Shown piece after piece: positions 2,213 to 21,481 of a stretch of DNA of 64,000 nucleotides. The stretch is from Pavona decussata (lineage: Eukaryota), in assembly GCA_977016875.1 (NCBI GenBank), contig CDRNST010000104.1, forward strand, positions 4,836,001 to 4,900,000, written 5' to 3'. Both the position numbers and the translations under genes were made by a program. The first letter of the stretch is position 1, and every line of letters starts with the position of its first letter. The notes below the pieces were generated by a model. That model saw nothing but the letters and a program-made list of their open reading frames with translations, ran no database searches and was not told the origin of the DNA.

Positions 2213-3148
2213 CTGCAAGTGGATGAAACTTCATCAAGGACCAGAAAAACTGTTTTGTATCAGTATCTTCAGCCAATAATGCTTATTGGGGATTTTACTA
2301 CAGAGGAGGAGAAGTTGACAATATTATTATTCTCCTTGGGTAGTGGAAATTACTGAACAACGAGATACCAAAATCAAGTATTTCTCTGTTAATTTCCCTG
2401 GCAGCATTTGTCCCTGTTGGCAAGGCTTCATAAAAATAAGGAATAAGGATGGCATTGCAGTGTAAAAGTTTGTATAATAATATTATTATACAAAACAAGG
2501 AGCTGCTGTTCTTAACATTCCACTATTTATTTCTAATATTATTGCCTGCCCAATGATTTTTAGATTTCAGGAGCCAGATTAACAAAGTCCTCTTAAGTGA
2601 AGATGAACCCTAAGTATTTTTTCTTGACAAAAGACTATCATTGTTGGACTAATAATAGCCTATTGTTAAGAAACTATGCTTAAGATATATCAACTCGGGA
2701 GAGCTTCAAGAATTTAGCTCCTGAGTTATTGTACAGGAAGTTTGTTAAGAACAAAGAAACAAACAGTTTTCACAAATTTACTAAAAATCAGTCTTTCATC
2801 TTACAATAAACTTCAAGACACAAAAAGCACATCTCTATTTCAGATCCCTTGTTTATTCGGCTTTCAGATGGCCAGATTATTTACAGATAAGAGGTTCTGC
2901 CCAAGGACTGCTAACTCTGAAACTAACAAGGGGCATTACTTTAAGTTTCTAGAATTGTACAGTGGGTGTAAAGATATTCTTACAGTGTACAAGCCAAAAA
3001 TGGACTTGTTCCATCCTTGACACCAGTTCAACATGTCAAAGATAATATATAATAAGATTTTAACCAGACATTCTGTAAACTGGCTAAACTTTCATTTGCT
3101 GTTGTTCTATTTATGTAACAGCACTGTAATGAAGAAGCCTTACTCATA

Positions 3149-3552
3149 TTAAGGACGGTGCCTACTTTTGTTACTGCGCATACGTTCTGTGCTTCTCAAG
3201 ATACTAGGGTTTCCTATGGGTGGTGCCTACTAATATAGGGACATTTTTGCACGGTTTAAAACTATGCAGAGAAAGCAGAACTTAGTAAGTGCTCTTGGTA
3301 TTTAAAAAGAAAACTAGGGGTAACCATGCATTTTTGAGAGAGAAAGCTTCAATTTGATAAGAAATGCCATACATTGCTTTGTATTTTAGCACTGTTTAGA
3401 ATAATTGTTTCTTAATTATCTCTAAGGAAATGAATCAAGTGGTTACCCCCAATTTTCTTTTTGGATTCCAATGGCCCTTGCTTAGATCTGCTTTTCCCGA
3501 ATAGTAATGAGCTGCACAGAAATATCACTGTATTGGTAGGCACCGTTCTTAA
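3149..3552. mobile_element. TTAA-flanked MITE (Kolobok-like), copy 1 of 4
   Basis: TTAA-GGACGGTGCCTAC ... GTAGGCACCGTTC-TTAA terminal inverted repeats. Homologous copies at 28520, 51500 and 55817. Confidence 0.8.
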
Positions 3553-5358
3553 GCCCTAAGATTTCTCCTTAGGCTTCCTCACCACTTCCTTTAGTTTTCT
3601 TCTTTTCTGTTGTATTTTAGACTTGTGTGTGCATGGTGAATTAGATAAAAAGGTGGTTCAGCTATAGCAGGATATGGTCTACATGTAAAAGTGGCTTAAA
3701 TATTTAAACTACAAGTTCAATGCTCAAGACTTTACTCTCATGTTCAGCTAACTTATTGTCCTTAATTGCTGACCTAGCAGTCAAGTTCTTGAAAGATGAC
3801 TAGTACCGGTACATGCAAATAACAGCATTACAATACTTAATAAAGAAAATTATACACAGATTAATCACCAAAAATCGTTACAGAGGGGCCTGGATATAAT
3901 TTTTCCTATTAGGATGTGGCAAAAGAACTAAATTATAGATAACTAAATAATAGCATTGTATAATGTGCATTGATTTCATAGAAAGTGATTTCTAGAAGCA
4001 ATTTCTGGAATATGGTCCAACAGTACATTGTAGTTTCAAGGAAATTCTAGAAAACCTAGGTTATTACAGTGGTAGATACCTCTTTAAACAAGTGTTTGTT
4101 TATAAATGTCTCTTTTTCAGTCGCATCACTATATTTGAGACCATGCAGACAATCACTTCTCCTTCGTACCACTTTAATTCCAGTATTATAGGTGTAGCCC
4201 ACAAGTGTATAAATCCCATTTTTATTAATTTTCTGTAATTGCTAACTTAACTTCCCATTGAAATTGAATTTAGAGTGAACAAGATGACAGAAATTCAAAA
4301 AACTGTTTCAAAACATCAACATCTCTTAGGTTAGTAGTTGTTAAATTTTGAGGTGGGAAATTGCTAAATTGATGAGCAATTTAAAAAAAAACTGTTGGGG
4401 CTAGGAATGAATCAGAATAACGTAAAGAGGAAGAATAAGACATCTCAAGTCGTTAAGACGATGTCTTATTTTTCCTATTTTCTTTAATCACTTAGTTGTT
4501 GCCAAATTAATATAGCAACCTTCAGGTGATACTATAGTTGAAAGTCATGCCTAATTTAAATTATTAGTTTCCCTGGCAAATAAACTACCTTCAAACCTTT
4601 TGTTAATTGAAAGAAACAATAAATTAGATATAAACAACAACATCCACCTGTTGTCAAAACTAAACATGCACATTTAGCTGACTGTGGTCTAAAGACACAT
4701 TTACACAATAAACTAAGCCTTGCAAACTGTTAGCAAATACAGTTGCCCACAAGAACATCACAAAAAAAGGTTTTGATGAAAAGAAAAAAAAAAAAAAATG
4801 GTCCTGCACATTTGATAGACATCTAAATACATTTTCACCTTCACATTTTCTCCCACCACTACCTCCACAGCCAACTACATGCACAACATGGACATTTCTT
4901 TCTCTGCACTAGAAAGCCAGCATACTTGGGCTGGATCTAATGGTAAGATGTGTCCTCACTATGATTGAATGCAAAGCCTGTTCTTAACAAACAATACTTA
5001 GAATATACTTTTATAGGTCCAACCCCTGAGTAGTGCATCCACTTTAGATAAACTGAACATGATGGAACAAGTACACAAATTCACTTTTTAACTTAAGCAA
5101 CATTTTCCTTGGTATTACCATTGTATTCACTTAAATTCCCAAATGTTTGAGGACAAAATACTATTCAAGATTACAGAAGCAATATTGAGGCTACTGCATA
5201 AAGTCCGTCTAATGTTTTCTTGGAAGGCCACACTAAACTATTTGTACCCCTAACAGACAGTTAAAACGATTTACTATCATCAAAAAACTGAACAAGTAAT
5301 ATCCAGAAACTTGTATTCCATGTTTCTCCTTTAGCTGTATATGGCCGATGATATGGTG

Positions 5359-6372
5359 CTACACCTTTGGAGTTTTAAGCTTAACTTGCAGCGGATATTG
5401 ATCATGTGTATATCCATTCAATGCTTGGATAGCAGCTTGAGCTTCTGGCAATGTAGCCATGGTGACAAAGCAAAACCCTTTGCATTGCCCCTTTTCCCAA
5501 TCCCACATAACATTTATCTTCTTTATCTCCCCATATGGCTGAAAGAGTTTATAAACTGAAGCTTGTGTTGCGCTAGTCCCAATGTTGTAAACAAACAGAG
5601 TAAAGCCTGCACCAGTCCCCCCAGAATACGACATTTGGTTAAACCCTGTCATGGAAGGCATTGGGGGTCCTCCAACCATAGGGTTGAATCGGTTGGCACG
5701 ACGATTCATCAGCGCTTGCCCCATGGGACCAATTGCACCCTGGTGATGTTGTGGACCAAGATTGAAACTTGCTCGTTCAGGCATACCAACTTGAGAAGCA
5801 CCCGGTGGGGGTTTTATTTTGGAGGTGTTATCGTCAGCAAAACGAACCCACATTATCTCTGTTGCCCCAGCAGGAATGGTGTTATTTAAGGCACTGATAG
5901 CAGCTTCAGCTTCCGACTTCAGATTGTAAAGAATAAACCCAACGCCTTTTGAGGACCCTGACATTGGGTCAGTGAGAATCTTGCTGTTGATGATGTTGCC
6001 ATATGGTTTAAATAGCTCCCTCAGGTCCTCTGACGTCCAAGTCTTTGAGATGTTACGGACGTACAAGTTAGCTCCCTTGATCCTCTCTCCTCCTTTCCTT
6101 GACAATGCAACCTTAATAAACTTGCTTTGTATTTGATGACCGTTGAGTTTATCGATTGCCAACTGAGCATGCTCGGGTGTGAAGTATTCCACAAATCCAA
6201 AGCCATAGCTGTATCCTGTTGCCTTGTGTCGGCAAATCTTGCAGGATTTGGTTGGGCCAATTTTTTGAAATAGAACCTTAAATTCTGCATCAGTGAAATT
6301 CTGTGGTAGATAGTTGATGATCAAGTTGGTTTTGTTTTCAAGTTCCGTACCATTGTCTCCTGCTTCTGCCAT
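5359..6372 (-). CDS. ELAV/Hu-family RNA-binding protein with three RRMs and Sex-lethal-like RRM1-2; single coding exon
   Basis: RRM1 TNLIINYLPQ..TGYSYGFGFVEY; RRM2 ANLYVRNI..KGVGFILY; hinge NRFNPM; RRM3 LFVYNIG..KGFCFVTM. Probable ATG at 6372 (accATGg). A 5'UTR intron lies at 6464-6916 (AAG|GTGAGC ... U17-ATCCAG). Confidence 0.92.
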   Translation of the reverse strand: MAEAGDNGTELENKTNLIINYLPQNFTDAEFKVLFQKIGPTKSCKICRHKATGYSYGFGFVEYFTPEHAQLAIDKLNGHQIQSKFIKVALSRKGGERIKGANLYVRNISKTWTSEDLRELFKPYGNIINSKILTDPMSGSSKGVGFILYNLKSEAEAAISALNNTIPAGATEIMWVRFADDNTSKIKPPPGASQVGMPERASFNLGPQHHQGAIGPMGQALMNRRANRFNPMVGGPPMPSMTGFNQMSYSGGTGAGFTLFVYNIGTSATQASVYKLFQPYGEIKKINVMWDWEKGQCKGFCFVTMATLPEAQAAIQALNGYTHDQYPLQVKLKTPKV

Positions 6373-6916
6373 GGTAGAACAAAATTTAAGCAACGGATAC
6401 AAAAATTTGGTATAGCAATGCGGCAGAAAAACGATTTCTGGGACTTTTGGCTTTAATTACTTTCTGGATAAAAAAAAAAAAAAAAAGAAACACAAGTAAG
6501 ATCTAGTCATCTAGCATAAATAAAATCATGATAAACAACTGCAATAAGCCAAAACAGTACAACGTTTTTCCGGAAAAAGTTAACTCCACATGTATGTTTC
6601 AAAACAGCTGTCAAATTTCAACACATGTATTCAGCCAGTTTTTTTAACAGACGCTACGTTCATAACCCAACGCCGACTTAGCTACTGAATTGACCATTAA
6701 ATGTAAAAGTTGTTTTTAAATATTTTAGACACAGACCTTCAGAATTTAGCACACTGGTAGTTTCCTCAGTTTGGCTTTAATATGTGTGACAAACAAAATG
6801 GTCGACTTGTCAACGAAACGCGAAGCAACACAAAACGGTTTATTACAACCTTTTCTCGACCATAAACATGGTTTTAAGTTGGCAGTCACTACTAAGGGTA
6901 ATACAATAAAGCTCAC

Positions 6917-7172
6917 CTTTTTATAAAATGTTCTCTACAATCATAAAACATCCAATTCTTGTCGCTTTTTCACCAAACCACATGGATGATGGAGGTCGCG
7001 ATGGATGGTATATTACCCAGAAGCCTTAGCGACGATTACTACGTGCGCAAAGGATTCTGGACTAGTAAACAGTTATGGCGGCCGTTTGCAGTAGGTTTCT
7101 GTTTACACTTTGTTTCTCGAGCTGTAAATGAAGGAAATGAAAGCTATTTGATCATTCAACAGACTCTAGGCG
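6917..7172. promoter_or_regulatory. Candidate bidirectional promoter shared by the Sxl/ELAV-like gene and germ cell-less
   Basis: Only about 256 bp separate the minus-strand first-intron donor (6916) from the GCL ATG (7173). The stretch is CpG-richer and has a YY1-like ATGGCGGCCG at about 7075. Confidence 0.6.
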
Positions 7173-10100
7173 ATGGGTTCCACGATATCATCCTTAGGTA
7201 CTTCAATAGGTGGAAAAAGAAAATATTCTGAATGCGAGGATAGTGAAGATGGCAGTCGAACTGAGGAGGACGCTGTGGTGGACGTGGTTAAGAGGTTTGA
7301 TATTAACGGATATTGTTTATAAACCTCTGAATTTCTTTCGAGCTTCTTTTTGTGGAAGGCGTGATGACCCAATGGTCTCCCGATCGAGCGGTCCCATTCC
7401 GTAGATGCAGCAGATAGAAACAACTTGTTCTTTAAGGAAGACATTTTAGTTTCACGTTTGCCAGCTGGCGAACTTGCTGGGGAATCCTGACAAATTGCTG
7501 GGAATGGGGGAGGGAGTTAATCTGCCGAGCAACTATAGAATACAGGGCCACTTTCACTTTGGTCCAACTCGTTTACATGTGTTGGCATGTTTTGAAGAAC
7601 GAGGCATAAACACAATAGATGCTATTACAGTGAGATTTAGTGGCCCTGTATTCTATATTTTGGCCTGATCTGTGATGGCTAGGATCCGATCAAGAGGAAG
7701 AAGCAATACTCTGAGATAAGCTTCTGTATTAGTGGGCTACCACGCCCGGTGGGACTCCCCTATATATAAGCTATGCAAGTATGTGCAGCACCAAAGGGTT
7801 AATGGTTCAAGAGCTGATTTGGTCTGAAATAGGGTATAGATTTTACTGTTTTGGTCTGAAAGTTGGTATGGATTTTATAGAAAAGGGTATGAACTCTAGA
7901 AACCAGGTCTGAAAATGGGTATGAAGTTTTGGAAACCAGGCCTGAAAAAGGTGCCGGAAACTCACATATTCTGGTCTGAAATAGGCTTTGGGTTTTGAGA
8001 ACTGAGCTACATGTACGTACAGACTAGCCTGACCCACGCAGTCGTTGTTAGGGGACTCGTATTACCTCCTCCCCACAAACGGCTGCTTACCCAAGCACCA
8101 CATTCCTTCCCCATAAATTTGTTTTACTCCCCGAGGACCCTAGCCAGTCACCATTGAGGCATTGTCTTATGATATCAAATCAAATTCCTGGTTACAACAG
8201 CCGCTTCCGTTTCCCATGAGCTTTGTGCAGTCTCTGGTACAGTCTTGAGAGATGCGGGAGTTAAGTGGGAATATATATTTTCACTTCTGGAATGGCTGGT
8301 CATGGCTGAAACACCAAAACAAATATCGAATGTGAATAAAAGCGCTTCTTGTGCGACATTTAATTTTGACACCATTATCTGCTGGGAGAGTCAAAATCTT
8401 CGGGAAAGTGTAATCGATCTTCCCCGCCTGATCGAGTTGACAGTTGGTGAAGATATCACCTCTTACGGGTACGGAAACTTTGGAGCAAATTTCTTTGTTT
8501 GTACGAAGTGCTACGACTAACGAGAGACTACCTCGATTCGAGAAAGCAAAGAAGAATGTGGAAGGTATCAAGGGGAGATCTGCAGTATTTATCAGTCCTT
8601 TTAAGACTATTAACGGAAAGTTAAACGACAAAGAGCGGATCAACTTGTGGTCCTTGCGGAAAATGTCGCACATGCCCCGAACTGAAATTGCAACAACAGA
8701 GCGAGTTTCAACTGCAAAATCTTTAAAGTTTACCAGCATATCAGGTAATATTTCATTTTCCTCCACACCGGCAAGGTCGACAAGACCGAAGGCAAAGCTT
8801 GATATATAAAAATATTAAAGCGACTTTGCGTAACCAGTCGGCAAATTGACGAAAATATCCCATCACGAATTCTTTGATTGCAGTCAGTTGATGGGCATTT
8901 AAACGAGAAATTTTGAACATAGGGCACTCGGTGCGTGGGGTGCTACGTACAGACCCTTACCAAAAATTTCAAGGAGTAGTCCCCCCCCCGCCCCCCAGGC
9001 TACTATGCTCTTAAAGACTTAACCTATTCGTACCTTTTCTTTTCTGCACTGCTTTGTGAGTTTGATGCTGTGAGCTTAAACATGCTTTTACTTTTGCATG
9101 TTGTAAATTTTTTAGGAAAAGGTTGAAGGGCACTTGTGACTACATTTACCAGACGCTCTTTCTGGATGGTGAAGGAAGTGACGTTACAATACATGCTCTT
9201 GGTTAGTGTTTTCAGTAGTTATCTTTACAGTATGACACTGCATTGGTATGTGAGTCGACTTTGTGTTAACATGGTTTCACAAATAGCGAGTTTTGACCAA
9301 TCTCAAAGGGGAAGTGTCATGGGGTTTTTGACCTCTTTTGTTAAAAATGGTGAAATAAGACCTTCGCTTTGCTACAAAATAATTCTAGAACAACAAGAGG
9401 AGAGAAATCAACTCAATTCTTGAAAGGAACAACTCGTACTCTGTTCTAGGGCATTTTGGAAACAAAAATACAAAAACTTAAAAAATATTAAATAAACATT
9501 TTTCGAGTTTCAATCCATTCCGACCTACTCTGTCTCAGAGTGGCCAAAGGCACTAATCGACAGTTTTATTGCACTGGGCCGATAATTTTTTACAAAACTA
9601 CACAATTATTTTTTTGTTTCTGTTGTCAGACAAACATTTTCGGGTTTTGAAATGATATCAAATTTTTGTGATACTAATTCCTTTTCAATTCAACCTTGCT
9701 TCCAACACAGGACTGTGACTTGAGAAAATAAACCTGTCCCAACTGGTTGACATAATATTTTATCATGCAATAATTATTGCAGCATTTCAATGGAAATGAT
9801 TATTTTTTTTATCCATACTAATCCTCTCATAAATAAAAAGACCTCTTGTTAGTTAAGTAATATTTTTACAAGACAAAGTATTTTTATTGTTATTGTAAGT
9901 TAATATTGTTGAATTATTAAGAAAATCACAAAAATGACTGGTAAGATAATTGACATCCATTCAATCAGTGGTTCATTCATTTTTGAGGTAACCTATCTTC
10001 TCTTTGTTTCTACATTACAGGAAAAGATTGGAAGCTTCACAGAATATATATGTGCCAGGTAGGTCTCCTGTCTGTCTCCTCATAAATGTCTTGCCTTGGA

Positions 10101-13100
10101 CAAATTAGTCGAACCAAGCATGCATTCGATTAATGCATTCTCTTAACAATTATAAACACGCTAGTATTTAGCAAATTATTTTATTTTAAGCTGCTATAGT
10201 TTATTTCACATGACAGTTTGTCAAAATAAAGCTACTGTAACCAAACAAATGTACTTTTTTACGTCCATTGTGCGCATCCGCCATCAGATCAACACTGACT
10301 TGCACAATATGAAAATAAATGGGAGGGTAAGCGTTATAAGATATTAAAAAAACCCTTTCTGGCTTGCTGGTATGTCAGCCGATAATGTCCTTGGCTAAGA
10401 GATTGTCCTTAAAATTTCACATTTGCCCTCAAAGCTTCGCTTCTCGGCAAAATATTTATTTTTAGAACAATCTCTCAGCAGCGGACATTATCAGCTGACA
10501 TACCAGCCGCCTGAAGGGGTTTATTTACTAAATAAGAGATGAGTGTAGGGTGCAGAGTTCCCAGTGTCAGAGTCTATCTGACTTATGCCGTCATTGGTCT
10601 TGGTGGGTTGGGTGAGATCATACAATGTATGTGGACTGAGGCGGCAGCCAGAGACGCCTTCTATATGCTGATGTCTGATCTCACCTCTCTGGTTCCTCCA
10701 CAATTCAACTACTACATGTAGCTGCGAGTGAGGAAAAGTGGAACCAGATCTCTCTTTCTTGCTCATTAATTCATTTATGTTTAAGACAAGAATTCTCCTT
10801 CCAACATGTCAGTTTGTTTTTCTATTGTCAGTCTGCATATTTCCAAAGTATGTTTAGTGGATCTTGGAAGGAGTCCAACGAAGAACATATTACTTTGGAG
10901 ATTCCAGATTATAATATTGATGTTGAAGGTAAGGAAATATCAAGGGTTTTGGAATATTATTGGCGTTAAAGATTTGCATGTAACATACATGCTCAACATT
11001 ATTGATGATAGGGCCAGAAAGTCATTAATACAGGCCATTCTAAACACAGAAATCATTATCATCATCAGCGTCATCATCATCATCATCCTTCATTCAGTGA
11101 TGTAGCGCCCAAGAGCTTACAAGCTTGTTCAAAAATGTATGGTCAGTAATGTACCAGAATGAACAAGAATGACCTGTGGGGAGCAGGAATGGCGCAGTGG
11201 TGAGAGCGCTCACCTCCCACTAATGTGGCCTGGGTTCGATTCCCGGACTTGGCGTCATATGTGGGTTGAGTTTGTTGTTGGTTCTCGTCTTTGCTCCGAG
11301 AGGTTTTTCTCCGGGTACTCCGGTTTTCCCCCGTCCTCAAAAACCAACACTTCTAAATTCTAATTTGATTTGGAAAGTGTCCCCAATTAGTGCTCTGCAC
11401 TAAAGACATAGACACTTAAATAAAGTGTTTTTTTTTTTTTTTTTTTACTGGAATTAGATGGAAAGGGACCAAAATGAACTGCTGATGCAATAAAGCTATT
11501 AGAAATTAAACAGGTCTGAATTTCCTGTCAAGTGACCCAGGAATTCTGTGTCATTCTGGTGTATCTGTAAAAGATGGCAAGCATGATGGCATGTTTCTAA
11601 ATCTCTCTTTGTAGCACTGAATACAGCGTTTGGTTCCCTGTACTGTGATGAGGTCACAGTGACTCCAATTAAGGTTGTACCTCTTCTAGCGGCTGCAAAT
11701 TTGCTTCAGTTGGTAAGTGATTATGTCCATCCTCAGATACACACTCAGGAGCAGGTAGTCAGGAGAAGACAAAGATAGCCGGCAGAACAGGCGCTAGTTT
11801 TTTGCAATTTTTTCTTTTTTTTTTTTTGGGGGGGGGGGGGGGCAAGTGGAGGCAAGCTTGACAGGAGGGGCATTGTGCTTGCCTCTGCCTGCCTGAAAAA
11901 TGCCCAAAAAAATTATGCCTGTTCTGCAGGCTAAGACAAATTAAGATTGCGCATTCCAGAGTTCAAATGAGACTGGGGACCAACTTTTAAATTTTCATTT
12001 AAACAGAAATTAGAGTCCATCACAAGAATTAAGCTCACATTAAAATTAGTCAGTTTACCATGTTTGAGGTTCTATCATATTCATTAGATTGCAACCATTT
12101 AGAAGGCGTTCAAAAATCAGAAAAATTAGAGACTTTGTATGGGTTTGGGTTCTAGAACTGATCTGAAACTAGTTGGTTCCTGCAGGCTTCACCTTTGGCT
12201 CTCGCCTTGTCATGGTGACGAGCCTTGTGTGTCTCCCTGACCCTAAGAGCTATGCTGGTTGGGACCTTGGTCCCTGGTAGGTCTAACCGTGGTCAAGGGG
12301 TAGAGGCTTGACAAAGAACTGCCCTTAAGTAGTGCTCCTAGTCGGGGGTGGGGCAATAGGTTAATCACCCAGCCCCATAAAAAGTCAGCAATTACTATAC
12401 CAAAACCTTAGACATGTTGAGGTGTTGTTTGCCATTTGGCATGAAGAAGTTTGGTGAAGGGGAAGACCCATGGGCTTTTTCCCTTCCTTGTTATCTAAAC
12501 TTTCTCTACTGCTTTTCCCAGTGAAGTCTTTGTCGTGCTAGACTATCTGCCCTGGGTCTCTAAGTTTAAGATGGATCATGTCCTACACAATTTTTTTCGT
12601 AGCTCTATTTGCTAAAAAACAATGTCATGTGGAACTGTTTCTTACATAACATCCAATCTGCTAAATGAAACAATAATTTTGTTTCAACTTGCAGACCTTG
12701 CTTATTGTGCAGTTCTCGAAAATATCCATACTCCCCCATGGGAGGTTTTTTTGTTTTGCACCCCCCTCCCTCCAGGAAATTCCAGTTTAGGTTTATACTT
12801 TGCTTCTAAACTTTTGAATTTTTTAGACTCCCCTCTCCCCAGGAATTTCTGATGACCTTCCATGGGGTTGGTATGGATTTTTTCTGGAACCGCACGTTGA
12901 GAATTGAGGCCGAACATTAATCGTGCATTTACACCAGTCCTGCTTGTCACCTCTGTTGTATTATTTGCAGGAAGGTTTGTCTCAGCAGTGTGCTGAGGTT
13001 ATGATGGAAACAATAAATCGAGCAACAGTGTGTGCGTATCACGTAGCAGCCACACAGTACTGTGAGGTGCAGGTTCAAAACAAGTGTGTGGAGTGGCTTG

Positions 13101-16100
13101 AAAGAAGACTTACTTCTGAGACATCAGTTTCTCTTCTGAAAGACATCAGGTGGGTGTAGCTTGGGATTGGTAGAATCCTAGGCACGATTAATAGCTTGTT
13201 TTTAGGGAAGAACTTGGGGTCCAAGAGAGGTAGAAATGGTACCCACATAGTAGAACATCTTCCACTTTCCGCGCAACAATCTTTTGGAAGTATCTTGACG
13301 ATTCAAATGAAAGTTACTGATCAGTATTTGAATCCTGTGGTATCGTTTATTGCGCTATACAAGATGGCTCTCCCTTTCGAGTCCTTGGATGAAACCCTAA
13401 AATATAGCCATTCATGTGAAAGCTACTAAGCAATACTTTATTGCTGTCATGTCGATTATGTTATACATTAAGGCAATTCTCAGTTTTTAAAATCCTGAAG
13501 TGAGGTCATTCAAATTAAGTTATGTAGTGGTAATCTTCCTGTGACACTGTCTATTATGACTTACAAGACAAGTCATTTTGACTTCTTAGTCTGTGGATCA
13601 AATGAAAGCTGCTGAGTAGTTATTTCCACTTGTTCTATTTGTTCATCAACTTTTCGATGCTGAACGACTATTTAGAGGCTTGTCTCGTCTGCTTCTGTTG
13701 CTTCAGATTTACAGCAGCCGAAGCAAGTAATTTTCATTGCTGTTTCATTCCAAGATACGGGCAGTATGTTAATACATTCTCTTACTCTTACAAGGAGCTT
13801 CATGTCCATTACTATACAGTGTGCGGATAAATTAACATTTTTAAAGTGAATAAGTTTTTTTCTGTCTTCTTTTGTAGCACAGAGCTGATGAGTGAAGTAG
13901 TGAATTCTCTAGGATTATTCGTTATGCAGATTGAAGTTGACGTTTATAATTTACTGAAAGTCTGGACCTACGTTCATCTTTACCCTGACTGCACGGGAAG
14001 CTGGAAGGATGTACGCACACAAACCAATGCGTATTTTTCATCACGAGAAAGCGATTTGAGCTTTTTAGAGACTGAAGACGGCAAGGCGTTTGTTCCTGCC
14101 TTTAGAGCTATCAGGCTTCACCACGTAATAAATGACTTGCGTTCTGTACAGCTCTTGGACACGGACAGAATTATTCCTCAAGGCAAGCAGTTCTGTTGTG
14201 TGAGGCATATAGTTGTTTTATAGTCAGCTGCATTAGCGCTCGATAAACCTCGTGTATGATTGCTAGCATGAGATGCTTGAGATTTGGAAAAATACTGTAC
14301 ATCAGCTCCAATGTTTTATCCCATGCTTTGTGCTTCGTGTGCAATAAAAACCTATGATGATGGACAAGATTTCCGTTTTTATCAAAAAGCGAAGTGCAAA
14401 GCAGTGGATAAAACATTGCAGCGTTTCCTGAACGAATTCAAGGCCACATGCAAAAACTCTGTTGAATCTGAGCTAAAACAGCAAAACGCGATCTGAAGTT
14501 CAACATAGGTCGGTTATGCACTGAGCTTTTCAAGCACAATATTGAAGTACATCAAGGTCTAAGTCCTGGCCGTATCCAACCTACTTTTTTTCCAGGTTGG
14601 CTTTATCCATTGTACAAGTCCCAGTGGGCATGTATGCTACTGATGTCCCAGAGTCGCGATCTAGGACCTTCAGTCGAGAAATTTGGACATGGAGCTCTCC
14701 GGTGTGGTAGGATATTGGAAAGGAGCTCATCGGTGAGTTAGTGTCATATCTGGCCGAGCGCTAGACTCAGGGGCACCCAACGGATCGTTTCGGTAAAGTA
14801 TCTGTTCGGAAGGCCCTTAATCCCCTACAATTTTCTAAAGGGAATTTTCGCCACGAACTTTCGTGATATGGGAAATTTAAGGCCTAGTGTTTTCGGATTA
14901 ATAAAAATGTTGTTTCGGGTACCAAAAAAAGGTCAGCTAAGATTTTCGGAAAGGAAATAAGACCTAAGGTTTTCGGGAAAAGGACAAAGATGCCCTACTA
15001 ATTTCGAAAAGACTCAAGTTCCCCTAGAATGACCGAACAGATAAAAAATATTATAGCGCTGCCTTAAATGAACCTATAGAGCTTTAAAGCCACTCCAGAT
15101 CGCCTAAAATAACGTTTCAAAGGATCTAAGAGAAAATTGTCGTTGGGTGCCCCTGTAGACTGCCGGCATTAATTAGTTTTCTCTAAAAGTAACAGAACAT
15201 CTTTTGCGGGAATCGAAGATCACCTTAACTGAATTCTTGACTCTCGCATTCCCCGGGCTCGCATCTACTATCTTTGAAGAAGCTAAGAAAATTGACTTGA
15301 CTCTCGGACTACGATCTTTGAAAAAGCTAAGAAAATTAAACGAATTCCCGAAGTGTAGAGAAGCACTCAAAACAATTCTTCCCTGCCATTTTTAAAAGTA
15401 GTGCAGATGTGAGGTGAATTGTGGACAGGGTTAGGTTACTTTCCTAAATAAGCTCTGCAATGTGTTTCTTCTGTCACTGGGTACTGGTCTAGTAGCTGTT
15501 TTATTGTTCAATGTGGTATAGAGTTTTGCACTTTGGGTCTGTAAATAATAAAAGTAACTACGATCTTCGAAGAGAACTACAGTGTGGGAATAGGTCATGG
15601 GTTTTAGAGACCTGCTGGAACTGAGAAAAGGCATCATAGCTTTTGAGTAGAACTGTCTTCTGAAAGGGTTTGTCGAGTTTAGGTGTGGTATTTTTAAGTA
15701 GGCATGCTTGAGGATTTAAGCTGATGTTGGATTTGATTGGCCCTGTGATTCCTGTTTGGGTTTATTGTCTAACTTTGTACTTTTGTTATGGAAATTACAT
15801 TGGTGGTCCTCCACTTGTTATTGTCAAGCATGTAGGTATGTTTTCGCACATTGAGTTAAGCAGTTGAGTGTGAAACTAGAGCTCCCTTGGTCAGCAAACC
15901 CAAACATGTCTACAATTATGGTATATAGAGAGGTTCGCAAATAACATTAGGTGTCAGTTGTAAGTCAGAGCTGTGCTACTGAAGGAATAAAGATTTGAAT
16001 CAAAGAAGACTTCTGGTTCCTCCGTTGCATTTGCAAGCGGGTTGCTATTTTACATATTTGGTGGAGAAGTTTACCTTGTTGGATACTCTGTGAGTGGAAC

Positions 16101-18476
16101 AATGTTCTTTTACTTTTATGCACCTAGCCATTGGTCGAAATTTGCTTTGGCAGGTCGATAATGTTCTTGAATTTATTCAAGTTTGTCATGATTTTATGGC
16201 GAGCGAACGATTTCTTCATGACATTTTTCGTGCTACTTTCTCGCCGGATTATTGTTACTCGTTTAGAGAAAATCAGTTTTGTGAGGTGTTGTTTTCCTTG
16301 AAGTCATCCGGTTACGTTAGTCTAGCGCGGAACCTCATGTCTTTTGCGTCAATCCAGTACGAAGACATTTTTGTTTGAAGATTTGGTGTCAGCTGCCAGT
16401 GTGGCTGCTTTTCGGTATTCGGTGGACCGCCGTTTTAGTGGGTTGGACTAAAGTTCATTGTTGGAGTTTATTTTACTTTTATTATTGTTTTTATTGTTGG
16501 TATTTCGTCAACGTTTCAGGAAGTATGGATCGCGTTCACCACATTGCAAAGTGGATATGTGTTTTCTGTTTTGAGGAGAAGAGCTCAGTGGTATATGATT
16601 GGACAGTGTTTCGGTGCAATCATTTGTTGTGTTTGTCATGTTTTAGAAGTAGAGCCAAGGAGCTCAAGAGAATGTTTGAATGTCTGTGTGGGGCTCAGTT
16701 CCCGCCCGAGAGCGCGTATGATTACGTGGTGACTTTCACGTCTTCTGCTCGCGAAGAGGCGGAACAGATGTCTCGTTGAACATATACATTCGCCGGTTGT
16801 ATCTTCATCATTAGAAACAGTGACTTTGTCGCCACATCATTTTGTTTAGGGGCGTAAATAACTGTAAAGCGATCTATATAATGGTTTTTAACGTGTTATG
16901 TTAATCTCGTTGGCCTATTTTAGTTTTTGAGTCATACAGCATCGGGGACGATGCCGAATTTAACAAGGGGAGTATGTTAGAAAGTCAAAAGGAATCATTT
17001 TTATTAGAACGCTTTTTAGTAGTTTCAATTAATGGGTTTACGTTTAAATGAATTTCTCGATTAGGGTTTGTTCTTTGTTTAAGGTCATTCAAGTTTTATT
17101 CAAGTTTGAGCCCGTAGAGGCATTTCCTTAGTTTTTGAGGAGTACTGTCTTCTGAAAGGGTTTGTCGAGTTTTGGTGTGGCATTTTTAAGTAGGCATGCT
17201 TGAGGATTTAAGCTGACCTTGGATTTGATTGGCCCTGTGATTCTTGTTTGGGTTTATTGTCTAACTTTGTACTTTTGTTATGGAAATTACATTGGTGGTC
17301 CTCCACTTGTTATTGTCAAGCATGTAGGTATGTTTTCGCACATTGAGTTAAGCAGATGAGTGTGAAACTAGAGCTCCCTTGGTCAGCAAACCCAAACATG
17401 TCTACAATTATGGTATATAGAGAGGTTCGCAAATAACATTAGGTGTCAGTTGTAAGTCAGAGCTGTGCTAAGGAATAAAGATTTTGCTTCAAAGAAGACT
17501 TCCGGTTCCTCCGTTGCAGTTGCAAGCGGGTTGCTATTTTACAATTATAAGCTTGAAAGAGCGTTAGGGTTTTGAAAACTGGCCAATCCAATTCCACAAA
17601 GAATTGAAGGATTGAGAGGATAACCGACCTAAATGCATTTCATGTTGGTTTAGCTCAGATTCACCGTAATCTTTGCATGTGGCCTTGAATTCTTTCAGGA
17701 AACGTTCTCCAATGTTTTATCCGCTGCTCTGCGCTTCATTTTGTGATAAAAACGGAAATCTCAACATAATCATAGGTTTTAATTGCAAACGAAGAGCAAA
17801 GCAGTGGACAAAACATTGGAGCAACTCTATCTTCGATGAATGGGTTTGAATTTGGGCGATGTATCATGCGTTGCATTAAAGTGGAATAAATTAATTCTTC
17901 TCTTACTTCGTGCACCATTTCAGTTCTTCGTTTTCTTAACACCAGCCGTTGGGCGAGAGGGGGGGAGGAGGGCTTTTTTCTCAGAGGGTGTTAAATCGAA
18001 GGTGGATGCTTTATCGAGGATTTTCTATAAGCCGGTAACGTGAAGATACCTGACAAACGGTATACCTAAGCATAGAAACTCTGCTGCCTTGATAGAACTG
18101 TACAGTCTTAGTACATTTATGGTTGTGTTTCCTTTTGTATTGACAGTATTGCTGGCGTTGGACAGGATTCTCCTATGGTGTTGACATCATCATGACGTAC
18201 AGCCCCAGAGCGAGGCAATTCTTGCTGCGACGTAATACCAACACGCACCCGGTTGGCGGAGTAGTGTGTCTTCATCAACAGAGAAATCTTGTAGTGCGAG
18301 TGGCCGCGGCCTCATTCGATTCTAAGGGTTGTACGAGTTATTACAAGTGCTCTGGACTGTTAGATTTGACGCTGGATCCGGACGAAGAAAAGGCTGTCTT
18401 GCAACTCGACCGTTCAGCCGTTTTTCCCCTGAGTGTCAGTGTTCATATGGCCCTTGTGTCGCCATCAGATGTTTGA
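7173..18476 (+). CDS. GMCL1: Germ cell-less protein (BTB-BACK, CUL3 adaptor); exons 7173-7294, 9116-9201, 10021-10058, 10832-10928, 11615-11712, 12971-13149, 13878-14182, 14596-14732, 18147-18476
   Basis: Spliced protein: MGSTISS (myristoylation motif)..KRK..YIYQTLFLDGEGSDVTIHALGKDWKLHRIYMCQSAYFQSMFSGSWKES..LFVMQIEVDVYNLLKVW..FLETEDGK..LRCGRIL..YCWRWTGFSYGVD. All blocks match recalled GMCL1 and all junctions are in phase (intron 7 uses a GC donor). Confidence 0.93.
7745..8990. mobile_element. CCC-terminal non-autonomous element (EnSpm/CACTA-like) with GGTCTGAAA subterminal repeats, interrupted by a second element
   Basis: Ends CCCGGTGGGACTCCC ... GGAGTAGTCCCCCCCCCG. Repeated GGTCTGAAA(TAGGGTA) units at about 7820-7990. 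Confidence 0.5.
8025..8945 (+). mobile_element. 921-bp TAGCC..GCTA element with perfect 9-bp TSD, carrying a broken zinc-binding (ZAD-like) ORF
   Basis: TSD CGTACAGAC at 8016-8024 and 8946-8954. Termini TAGCCTGACCCACGCA / TGCGTGGGGTGCTA. ORF remnant from 8302: MAETPKQ..SASC..VCTKCYD*..RFEKAKKNVE. Confidence 0.78.
10348..10524. mobile_element. Palindromic MITE
   Basis: AAACCCTTTCTGGCTTGCTGGTATGTCAGCCGATAATGTCC is mirrored by GGACATTATCAGCTGACATACCAGCCGCCTGAAGGGGTTT. Confidence 0.65.
11178..11427 (+). mobile_element. tRNA-derived SINE with V/Meta-type conserved core
   Basis: A-box TGGCGCAGTGG, B-box GGTTCGATTCCC, core TTTTCTCCGGGTACTCCGGTTTTCCC, and AATAAA followed by a T-run. Confidence 0.8.
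11776..11933. mobile_element. TAGCC..GGCTA element with degenerate 9-bp TSD
   Basis: TAGCCGGCAGAACAGGC ... GCCTGTTCTGCAGGCTA; flanks agacaaaga/agacaaatt. Confidence 0.7.
12200..12400 (+). mobile_element. Probable RTE-clade LINE 5'UTR remnant
   Basis: GCCTTGTCATGGTG..GAGCTATGC..GGGGGTGGGGCAATAGGTTAATCACCCAGCCCCATAAAAA resembles RTE/BovB-type 5' leaders as recalled. Confidence 0.45.
12705..12895. mobile_element. MITE (TGTGCAGTTC..GAACCGCAC family)
   Basis: Inverted termini TGTGCAGTTCTCGAAAATATCCATAC / GTATGGATTTTTTCTGGAACCGCAC. Confidence 0.65.
13295..13640 (+). repeat. Degenerate ~100-bp tandem repeat (3-4 units)
   Basis: Recurring ATTCAAATGAAAG(C/T)TACTGA.CAGTA.TT..CTGTG...TTTATT...TACAAG...GAGTC..TGGAT units at about 13300, 13410, 13508 and 13598. 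Confidence 0.6.
14305..14533. mobile_element. Partial palindromic MITE; inverted relative to the copy at 17604-17825; full copy at 55119-55475
   Basis: Shared TTCCTGAA.GAATTCAAGGCCACATGCAAA..TGAATCTGAGCTAAA..TAGGTCGGTTAT block. Confidence 0.75.
14768..15155. mobile_element. hAT-like MITE with apparent 6-bp TSD
   Basis: Perfect 15-bp TIR CAGGGGCACCCAACG / CGTTGGGTGCCCCTG, flanked by TAGACT on both sides. Confidence 0.8.
15408..17543 (+). mobile_element. Non-coding LTR retroelement (Gypsy-type ends, TRIM/LARD-like)
   Basis: About 410-bp direct repeats (15640-16053, 17133-17543) ending TTTACA. PBS TGGTGGAGA at about 16058 (tRNA-Ala-complementary). PPT TCGGGGACGATGCCGAATTTAACAAGGGGAGTA precedes TGTTAG at 16975. 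TATA-like and AATAAA signals lie within the repeats. No gag/pol motifs internally. Confidence 0.8.
17604..17825. mobile_element. Partial palindromic MITE (reverse complement of 14305-14533)
   Basis: Reverse complement aligns by eye to 14305-14520. Confidence 0.75.
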
Positions 18477-20026: not shown

Positions 20027-21481
20027 ATGGGAGGGTCTCTTTCGCGGAGTCCGAGGCAGAAATCCGAGAAAAAAGATAAAGCAAATGGATCTGTGCGAGC
20101 GACAGTAGTTGCGAATCAAAGTGACAAGGGAATTAAAGCTGGAAGGCGCGAAAAAACTGCTGAAGGGACGGACAAAGAAGCAGGCGGTTTGGAAAGAAAA
20201 GACAGCAGGGATTTCTGGATATCGCATATGAGAAAGAACTCTCGAGATGCTCTAAATTCTCAAACCACCAACACACAAACACCGCGCTCGAAAACTCCGC
20301 GGGAGTTAAGCCCTCAGGGAAAACAACAAAATGGCCAACACGTTGAGGTGCGTTCCGTCCCAGGCAAGAACAACAATCTAGCAAGCCCAGATAGTCCTTC
20401 ACTGAGTATTCAGACGAGTAATAACGAGGGAAAGCGCGTGTCGATGAATGGTGCAGCTGCTCATGTTGTCGGGCCTGAAAATCGAGATGTTCGAGGTTCG
20501 AATTCCATGGTTGTCCCGCATTCGCCTGGATTGCTTCCTGGGCAGGTTAGCGGGAGCATTGATGCGTCAAATTTGATCACAATCAACGAACTGTACAATT
20601 ATTTCTGGGACGGAGCGATACATTCAAGTATCTTCGATCCTTCTTATATGCTTGTTGTAGATGCTAGACCTCGAGCGGATTACGATCGCGGTCATATTAT
20701 TCTAGCACGCTGCTCGGCTTCTCTGCACAATGATTTAACTTCCGCAATGTATGGTTACGGTTACAGCACAGGTGGCGAAGAGGTGATCGCTAATCGGCTT
20801 AGTGAGTACACACACGTCGTTGTATACGGCAACGCAGTCTCGGACACTAGAAATGAAGATCTACCCGAGATTAAACTTATGAGGGAGCTGATGAATTATG
20901 AATTAGTGGAACCCCTTTTTCTGATTTCTGGATTTGAGAGCTTTCAACAAGCTCTGCCTTTTATGTGCACAACCAAGGATCTGACAATACGCCGTGACCA
21001 TAAAGAAATCACAGTATACCCTTCTGTGATTTTGGAGAACCAGCTCTATTTGGGTCGAGGCGAGCAAGCAACCAATAGCAAAATAGTATCAGATTTAAAG
21101 CTCACACATGTCATCAACATTGGAAGTGAGCATGCCTCGCCGTTCACTGATCGCATTCAGTATCTTAATATCAAGCTGGATGATAATCCTTCTAGTGATT
21201 TGAAAATTTATTTCTCAAAGGGTTATCAGTTTATAAGCGATGCACTGTCTGCAGGTGGACGGATCCTGGTACATTGCAATCTTGGCGTTAGCCGCAGCTC
21301 CACAATTGTAATTGCTCACTTAATGAAATCAAGACAGTGGACCCTTAAAGTGGCTCACAACTACGTCAGAGATAGGAGGACCTGCATTCGGCCTAATCGT
21401 GGCTTTTTACATCAACTGTCAGACTGGGAACAAAGTTTATTTGGAACTAAGTCTACTGATCCTGATGAGTTGTGGTTTTAG
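20027..21481 (+). CDS. STYXL1/MK-STYX-like rhodanese(CH2) + dual-specificity phosphatase with intact catalytic motif; single coding exon
   Basis: 484-aa ORF with ELYN..DPSYMLVVDAR..YDRGHI (CH2); YPSVILENQLYLG..QA...KI..DLKLTHVIN; general acid LDD; VHCNLGVSRS; AHLM; RPNRGFLHQLSDWE. N-terminus MGGSLSRSPRQKSEKK. Confidence 0.9.
   Translation: MGGSLSRSPRQKSEKKDKANGSVRATVVANQSDKGIKAGRREKTAEGTDKEAGGLERKDSRDFWISHMRKNSRDALNSQTTNTQTPRSKTPRELSPQGKQQNGQHVEVRSVPGKNNNLASPDSPSLSIQTSNNEGKRVSMNGAAAHVVGPENRDVRGSNSMVVPHSPGLLPGQVSGSIDASNLITINELYNYFWDGAIHSSIFDPSYMLVVDARPRADYDRGHIILARCSASLHNDLTSAMYGYGYSTGGEEVIANRLSEYTHVVVYGNAVSDTRNEDLPEIKLMRELMNYELVEPLFLISGFESFQQALPFMCTTKDLTIRRDHKEITVYPSVILENQLYLGRGEQATNSKIVSDLKLTHVINIGSEHASPFTDRIQYLNIKLDDNPSSDLKIYFSKGYQFISDALSAGGRILVHCNLGVSRSSTIVIAHLMKSRQWTLKVAHNYVRDRRTCIRPNRGFLHQLSDWEQSLFGTKSTDPDELWF

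Follow-up and report, generated by a model that had tools for sequence, protein, structure and literature searches.

The window analyzed here, a 64-kb stretch of Pavona decussata DNA taken as a whole, holds an ELAV-like gene on the minus strand and germ cell-less (GCL/GMCL1) on the plus strand, arranged head to head. GCL acts as a germ-cell factor in Drosophila. An earlier note on this DNA had described the minus-strand RRM gene as Sex-lethal-like and the two genes as having a common promoter of ~250 bp. The locus raises the question of whether one promoter drives both genes and whether that promoter belongs to the germline. The divergent arrangement was upheld, as both genes are real and the same pairing was found in 7 related loci, a recurrence which places the pairing beyond chance. 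The positions on which it was based were also right: the donor lies at 6916, the unbroken ORF at 5359-6372 and the GCL ATG at 7173. Read from the sequence, the distance from the donor G at 6916 (minus strand) to the GCL ATG (plus strand) was 256-257 bp. This spacing leaves 256 bp at the most for a shared promoter and puts the putative TSSs within the <1-kb criterion for bidirectional pairs, with exon 1 use taken from Acropora RNA.

The germ cell-less gene

The GCL model runs from the ATG at 7173 to 18476 on the plus strand and has 8 coding exons with 464 codons. Exon 1 (7173-7294) begins with MGSTISS, a start of the N-myristoylation type, and ends at a GT donor; tblastn identity of this exon was 97.5% to locus L004 and 68% to Acropora. 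Exon 2 (9116-9201), in which the predicted BTB domain starts, has AG and GT sites in matching phase and was recovered by tblastn in 7/7 loci. Exon 3 (10791-10928) encodes the predicted BTB core and was placed by a weak Pfam BTB match, by its phases and by tblastn; of all boundaries in the model, its acceptor is the least secure. Exons 4 (11615-11712), 5 (12971-13149) and 7 (14596-14732) were each defined by tblastn together with splice sites and phase. Exon 6 (13878-14182) fits in phase when a GC donor (AAG/GCAAGC) is used, and exon 8 (18147-18476) includes the stop codon. A GT donor at 14198 is an alternative end for exon 6 and also keeps the frame. A further GCL exon upstream of 7173 is possible.

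The exons were searched singly; the Pfam BTB score refers to exon 3 alone (E 0.0056, 17.3 bits) and was under the cut-off of 20.5; the annotated Nematostella GCL orthologue has PF00651 BTB. Among solved structures the exons matched GMCL1 only, and the GCL-specific C-terminal region was found. The coral protein is like known Germ cell-less/GMCL1 proteins (Drosophila GCL, human GMCL1, PDB 9ijj) in its MG start and in the succession of a predicted BTB domain and the GCL-specific C-terminal region, but at the length of the model it is shorter. Starts of the type MG[SG][TV]xx[ST], with (V/P)KR downstream at the splice site, were seen in all orthologous loci (7/7), the N-termini being MGSTISS in the window and MGSTVSY, MGSTISG, MGSVLSN, MGGTNTK and MGGTLSG elsewhere. 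With MG at the start and a small residue at position 6, GCL carries a predicted N-myristoylation signal.

Family identity of the minus-strand gene

The minus-strand gene has a complete single-exon coding sequence (5359-6372, stop included) for a 337-aa three-RRM protein of the ELAV/Hu family, as indicated by the unbroken ORF, by three Pfam RRM_1 domains (E 6.9e-57) and by TIGR01661. The score for TIGR01661 (ELAV_HUD_SF) was 283.5 bits, above the cut-off of 279.1, and orthologues scored 283.8 (Acropora P0006) and 257.6 (Nematostella P0021, partial). In contrast, the sex-lethal model TIGR01659 gave 219.5 bits, less than half of its cut-off of 486.2. Structure matches pointed to HuD/HuC for RRM1-2 and to RRM3 of Elav and HuR for RRM3 (residues 249-336). 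Pfam and structure matches placed the third RRM at residues 252-332, whereas Drosophila Sex-lethal has only two RRMs, RRM3 being absent. The two proteins are alike in RRM1 and RRM2 (164 bits to the Sxl structure vs 171 to HuD), in keeping with Sxl being a sister branch of the ELAV family. No Sxl-named protein occurred among the named ones in the best 120 relatives. With three RRMs, an RRM3 of the ELAV/HuR type, TIGR01661 passed and TIGR01659 failed, the description as Sex-lethal-like was not borne out; judged by its sequence, the gene is a member of the ELAV/Hu family and not Sex-lethal. The regulatory logic of Drosophila gcl and Sxl does not carry over to an ELAV/Hu gene, and the parallel with the fly is coincidental.

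Three RRMs with a hinge before RRM3 are common to the coral protein and the ELAV/Hu family (Drosophila Elav/Fne/Rbp9; vertebrate HuR/HuB/HuC/HuD; lophotrochozoan Elav2). Identity was 45-50% to mollusc and annelid Elav2-type proteins and only 37-39% to the other two ELAV paralogues that this coral genome contains. The ELAV proteins of the paired loci formed one clade (support 99/90). The ELAV genes studied so far in Nematostella are NvElav1 (neural) and NvElav-like (single ectodermal cells). Published primers for these two genes (supplements of PMC4284808 and PMC4968017) were not found in the Nematostella locus at <=3 mismatches, in a weak test with one usable NvElav1 primer, and the orthologue is probably neither of them. 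It would be a third, unstudied ELAV-family gene, nearer bilaterian ELAVs than the coral's other two paralogues.

Leader and transcripts of the ELAV-like gene

Upstream of the coding sequence (minus strand), positions 6373-6463 form the 5'UTR portion of exon 2. The acceptor reads TTTATCCAG/AAAGTAAT, so that exon 2 starts at 6463, and Acropora RNA contigs start exon 2 at the homologous base. The 5'UTR intron (6464-6916) has GT at 6916-6915 and AG at 6465-6464 in agreement with the splice consensus, and removal of the homologous intron was observed in Acropora RNA contigs. Non-coding exon 1 ends at the donor TATAAAAAG/GTGAGC (minus strand), which is kept in an alignment of 5 species. Its minimal extent is 6917-6980, as aligned to positions 9437-9499 of the Acropora locus L001, an exon present in RNA contig L020. 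In the Acropora RNA contigs L019 and L020 this homologous exon 1 is spliced to 9883 onward. Splicing support came from public Acropora RNA contigs (n=3). As the Acropora-aligned exon reaches at least ~6980, ~192 bp remain in the window to hold the core promoters of the two genes together with the GCL leader.

The third Acropora contig, L003, carries on the same acceptor another leader of 30 nt, which was not found in 10 kb on either side of the locus, and a second, distal TSS of the ELAV-like gene is possible. The leader is exactly one nucleotide below what we take to be the assembler word length (31), so it may be an assembly artefact. Ten further contigs (L009-L018) were ruled out as transcripts; they are genomic, come from a sister species and run collinear with positions 3562-7838 of the window at ~90% identity.

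Conservation of the gene pair

By tblastn, GCL exons lay head to head with the ELAV-like gene in 7/7 loci examined: L001 and L002 (Acropora), L004, L005, L006 (Nematostella), L007 and L008. The Nematostella locus is scaffold DS469562.1, in which a 484-aa BTB gene is annotated. A linkage unique to this lineage would, by the earlier note, have refuted its idea; the pair was found in Acropora, in several other relatives and in Nematostella. A phosphatase gene lies 3' of GCL in corals and 3' of the ELAV-like gene in Nematostella. From this gene order, the ELAV-like/GCL pair appears as one unit that is inverted relative to the phosphatase gene between anemone and corals. The loci of Nematostella, L007 and L008 had 1.3-2.5 kb from ATG to ATG, and their promoters may be less compact.

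The pairing is kept from Scleractinia to Nematostella. In three bilaterians (chiton, annelid and tick), a search from the ELAV side found no GCL in the 10 kb around the nearest ELAV gene. The neighbours of human and fly GCL are not known to include ELAV genes.

The intergenic region

The interval 6917-7172, which includes both leaders, is the candidate shared divergent promoter, as supported by its CpG content and its conserved blocks. The observed/expected CpG ratio was 1.04 in this interval vs 0.56 in the whole window, and sequence blocks could be aligned with the sister species, L004, Acropora and L005. Two mirrored CCAGAA(G/T)CCTT(A/T)GCG boxes, Staf/ZNF143-like and one toward each gene, were found at 7017-7060. 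The pattern CCAGAA-N28-38-TTCTGG has its single match in the 64 kb there (0.05 expected). The mirrored CCAGAA...TTCTGG occurred once each in the Acropora, L004 and Nematostella loci, always between both genes; L005, L007, L008 and the sister species lacked the exact pattern and had nothing beyond looser SBS-like matches.

A second arrangement at 7065-7106, read from the sequence, consists of the YY1-like box ATGGCGGC (7075-7082) between the inverted pair GTAAACAG and CTGTTTAC. It is kept in the sister species and L004, and YY1-like GCCAT boxes were also present in the Acropora, L007 and L008 promoters. The vertebrate extended motif ACTACANNTCCC was rejected, since an ACTA stretch lies beside the Staf/ZNF143-like box at a different spacing.

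The Staf/ZNF143 boxes were scored by a rule derived from vertebrates (PMC3082894), and the assignment to this factor comes from vertebrate data. The GCL-facing box, TACCCAGAAGCC on the plus strand, fits the NNCCCR + C12 rule. The 18-bp rule (CCCR at positions 3-6, C12) also holds for ATCCCAGAAAGC and TTCCCAGAAGTC in Acropora and for TTCCCAGAAGAC in Nematostella; the ELAV-facing box of the window has TCCA, not CCCA. A random region yields 0.008 Staf-box matches at <=4 mismatches. In human, Staf/ZNF143 sites are enriched in bidirectional promoters and are sufficient there for two-way transcription (PMC3082894). Like the vertebrate promoters of this class (TMEM186-PMM2, C11orf10-FEN1; PMC3082894), the coral region is CpG-rich and TATA-less, with predicted divergent starts <<1 kb apart and at least one 18-bp box with CCCR core and C12 beside YY1-type boxes. 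Unlike them, the coral boxes form a mirrored pair ~40 bp apart that is kept from coral to anemone. The mirrored element resembles the Staf/ZNF143 sites of vertebrate bidirectional promoters, and its boxes are putative sites of this kind. The high CpG together with SBS-like and YY1-like boxes gives the region the look of a broadly active promoter and not of a germline-specific one.

Discussion

The locus is best explained as an old divergent pair driven from one compact TATA-less promoter, which we consider probable. Both TSSs would fall inside ~190-256 bp of CpG-rich DNA, where the Staf/ZNF143-like boxes and the YY1-like box may recruit broadly expressed factors and fire transcription both ways. 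Either gene, if moved off, would be cut from its promoter; this would account for the survival of the pair as a unit through rearrangement. Transcription of the two genes together would be basal, probably broad or maternal, with any tissue bias coming from other elements. A germline-specific module would be unnecessary for what is seen.

How the pair arose is a matter on which a compatible proposal can be made, concerning origin only, although we regard it as unlikely. An intronless ELAV retrocopy would have landed just upstream of GCL in an anthozoan ancestor, come under the reverse activity of the GCL promoter and acquired its 5'UTR exon and intron in that place. Such an origin is consistent with the unbroken coding sequence, with a sole intron in the 5'UTR and exon 1 inside the GCL promoter region, and with a pairing confined, among the loci examined, to the anthozoan-type clade, the nearest chiton, annelid and tick ELAV genes having no GCL beside them. 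The unbroken coding sequence, however, is common to 3/3 ELAV paralogues of the genome and to the examined chiton, annelid and tick genes, so that the lack of introns predates the pairing and does not point to recent retrocopying. On these grounds a recent retrogene was rejected.

The first reading of this locus was a co-regulated germline or gametogenesis pair; the promoter would then be active mainly in germ cells or oocytes, with the GCL adaptor and the RNA-binding protein acting together. We find this quite improbable. A gonad transcriptome of Euphyllia ancora, a coral, includes Gcl transcripts (PMC7579821), but their presence there is uninformative on specificity, and in Acropora digitifera expression of GCL-like 1 increases between blastula and gastrula, as in zygotic embryonic expression (PMC4824149). 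Germline specificity does occur in the ELAV family, where flatworm melav2 is testis-only and needed for spermatid differentiation (PMC2795745), and the weak primer test separates the Nematostella orthologue from the studied neural ELAV genes; the analogy with Sxl fails, as the RRM gene is ELAV/Hu. High promoter CpG fits a region unmethylated in the germline, whereas the promoter motifs are of a kind seen in broadly active bidirectional promoters. A narrower version, to which we give slightly less credit still, is an anthozoan functional module in which GCL, as a membrane-anchored CUL3 adaptor, would be co-activated with a non-neural ELAV-type protein in germ cells or oocytes by the mirrored element conserved in Hexacorallia. 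If true, cnidarians would employ an ELAV protein in the germline, in parallel with the insect gcl/Sxl relationship yet independently of it.

That the genes are mere neighbours with independent promoters, the ELAV-like gene being transcribed mainly from a distal exon 1 and the closeness having no regulatory meaning, is very unlikely, as the L003 leader on which this would rest may be artefactual, the proximal exon is the one used in 2/3 Acropora RNA contigs, conservation extends to the proximal donor and promoter blocks, and the pairing outlived an inversion as a unit.

The analysis corrects a tempting gene name, Sxl, to ELAV/Hu and draws attention to a probable third, unstudied ELAV-family gene in Nematostella. 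The element at 7017-7060 is short and well defined, and could be used to test whether two-way promoters of the Staf/ZNF143 type predate the cnidarian-bilaterian split. Fine-scale gene order in cnidarians is widely held to change fast. Against this background, a pair that stony corals and Nematostella both retain, in spite of an inversion, is a clear case of gene order probably held by a shared promoter.

Identity of the two genes

The minus-strand gene (5359-6372, ATG included) was a single unbroken reading frame encoding a 337-aa protein with three RRMs (Pfam RRM_1, three stretches, E 6.9e-57). RRM1-2 were about equally near HuD (171 bits), HuC (167) and Sxl (164). At residues 249-336 stood the third RRM, a domain lacking in Sxl; its structural matches were RRM3 of Drosophila Elav and RRM3 of human HuR. 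Among the NCBI curated models the protein passed TIGR01661 ELAV_HUD_SF (283.5 bits, cut-off 279.1) and fell short of TIGR01659 sex-lethal (219.5 bits, cut-off 486.2). Among the best 120 of 576 relatives from a word search, the named proteins were ELAV-like, Elav2 or generic ('hypothetical protein'), and the name Sxl was absent. On the third RRM, the missed sex-lethal cut-off and the names of these relatives, the Sex-lethal-like identity proposed in the earlier note was rejected, and by sequence the gene is assigned to ELAV/Hu. Two more ELAV-type genes with unbroken coding sequences, 37-39% identical, were found on another contig of the same genome (C171; L022 and L023). Since the coding exon was intron-free in 3/3 coral paralogues and in chiton, annelid and tick genes (L025, L026 and L027), this appears to be an old and common condition in this part of the family.

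The plus-strand gene is, as judged from its exons searched singly rather than as a joined spliced protein, germ cell-less (GCL). The exons matched the GMCL1 structure (PDB 9ijj) with E 4.9e-23 and 4.7e-21, covering chain residues 254-355 and 404-510 of 524, and the BTB match of exon 3 alone was weak, under the Pfam cut-off. Eight coding exons made up the model; their acceptors were AG and their donors, except for one GC, were GT, and the reading frame closed at 1395 nt. Exon 1 (122 nt, plus strand, ATG at 7173) encoded MGSTISSLG...VVK and was followed by a GT donor. Exon 6 (13878-14182) ended at a GC donor at 14183 (AAG/GCAAGC), an apparent GC-AG splice of intron 6; a GT 15 nt further on would be an in-frame alternative donor. 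The boundaries placed with least certainty are this donor and the acceptor of exon 3. Intron 7 contained a plus-strand ORF of 152 aa (16321-16776) with a RING-like cysteine pattern (CVFCF...CNHLLCLSCF). On either side of this ORF stood near-identical plus-strand repeat copies about 1.5 kb apart (15712-15864 and 17204-17356), which may have arisen by tandem duplication or belong to a mobile element.

First exon and 5'UTR intron of the ELAV-like gene

The donor of ELAV-like exon 1 (minus strand, G at 6916) was of consensus type, TATAAAAAG/GTGAGC. The acceptor of exon 2, which runs from 6463, was strong, with a T-run followed by ATCCAG/AAAGTAAT about 90 nt 5' of the ATG. Re-reading of the donor, acceptor, ORF and GCL ATG bore out the coordinates and the 256-bp donor-to-ATG spacing of the earlier note. 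The Acropora orthologue P0006 (ELAV-like protein 3, Acropora cervicornis) was 80% identical to the window protein and was encoded on genomic contigs L001 and L002 and on three short contigs from runs SRR27038688-90. In two short contigs, L019 and L020, positions 9437-9499 of L001 were joined straight to 9883 onward with 100% identity; because the intron is missing from both, they were taken as RNA-derived. The intron removed began with GTAGGG after ...AACAGAAAG and ended with a T-run and ATCCAG, and its donor and acceptor aligned with those of the window. These Acropora contigs support the 5'UTR intron predicted for the window. Alignment to Acropora would extend exon 1 to at least about 6980, so that about 192 bp remain up to the GCL ATG. 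In a further short contig, L003 (run SRR27038689), a different 30-nt leader (positions 1-30) was joined exactly at the same exon 2 acceptor, and no copy of it was found in L001 within 10 kb in either direction. This leader may stem from an alternative first exon farther away, or from an assembly artefact of length k-1.

Conservation of the divergent pair

For six relatives of the ELAV-like protein, the DNA surrounding their genes was searched with the GCL exons of the window. GCL lay upstream of the ELAV-like gene, on the opposite strand, in every locus: Acropora (L001/L002), L004 (ELAV-like identity to the window 88%), L005 (71%), Nematostella vectensis (L006, scaffold DS469562.1), and L007 and L008 (49% and 52%). 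The L006 record carries a 484-aa BTB gene annotated at 2750-8009 on the minus strand. In each locus the first GCL exon had an MG start and a (V/P)KR end, and residue 6 was small. The two ATGs stood 630-800 bp apart in coral-type loci and 1.3-2.5 kb apart in L008, Nematostella and L007. By maximum likelihood, the ELAV proteins of the paired loci grouped in one clade (support 99/90), with the two other paralogues of the genome far outside. The wider conservation for which the earlier note had proposed a check thus held from Acropora to Nematostella in all six loci; approached from the ELAV side, no GCL was found within 10 kb of the nearest chiton, annelid and tick ELAV genes, whose orthology is uncertain. 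No mention of this pairing was found in the literature searched. The ELAV-like gene and GCL are a genuine, ancient and compact divergent pair, of a known kind.

The window and Acropora had a dual-specificity phosphatase gene (DSPc; 20027-21481 in the window) downstream of GCL, whereas its Nematostella orthologue (L006 12682-14070; Rhodanese and DSPc in the record), 39% identical over the full length, lay downstream of the ELAV-like gene. Since the phosphatase stands on opposite sides, the pair was inverted as one unit; the three genes, linked in both lineages, appear to form one block with an inversion inside it. L001 (19588-20082) and L005 (17909-18394), both coral-type loci, each had an HLH-domain gene of 161-164 aa at 7-9 kb from the ELAV-like gene on its downstream side; the homologous position falls beyond the start of the window.

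A mirrored element in the shared promoter

At 41% G+C, the interval 6917-7172 reached 1.04 in CpG observed/expected, compared to 0.56 across the whole window; no suitably placed TATA box was seen in it by eye. Alignment with four relatives revealed conserved blocks, and the standout was a pair of mirrored boxes at 7017-7060, CCAGAAGCCTTAGCG and CGCAAAGGATTCTGG, separated by 14 bases. The pattern CCAGAA-N28-38-TTCTGG matched once in the 64-kb window (0.05 expected) and once per locus in Acropora, L004 and Nematostella, always between both genes. The Nematostella element consisted of TTCCCAGAAGACATTGCA, 23 bases and GGCTTCTGGGA. Enrichment of Staf/ZNF143 sites has been reported for human bidirectional promoters, where they suffice for two-way transcription (PMC3082894). 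The coral and anemone boxes agree with the rule published for the 18-bp Staf/ZNF143 site, C at position 12 and CCCR at 3-6 (PMC3082894). A Staf consensus matched with ≤4 mismatches in 5/8 promoter regions, where 0.008 matches would be expected in a shuffled region, and YY1-like GCCAT boxes were seen in the promoters of most lineages. We infer Staf/ZNF143 and YY1 as putative factors at the promoter of the pair.

Implications for function

The suggestion of a germline co-regulated pair drew on Drosophila, in whose pole cells gcl keeps Sxl silent. Because this link rests on the Sxl-like naming, which is wrong, it is not applicable here. Gcl transcripts were reported in the gonad transcriptome of Euphyllia ancora (PMC7579821), and in Acropora digitifera GCL-like 1 went up between blastula and gastrula (PMC4824149). 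The germline idea is not absurd, since the ELAV family does include a germline-specific gene, melav2 of a flatworm testis (PMC2795745); a germline function of the ELAV-like/GCL pair is speculation. None of the published primers for NvElav1 and NvElav-like was found in L006; the Nematostella orthologue is thus probably a different gene from both, and would seem to be an ELAV-family gene not yet studied. The outcome is the description of a conserved mirrored promoter element and the correction of one gene name, from Sxl to ELAV/Hu.
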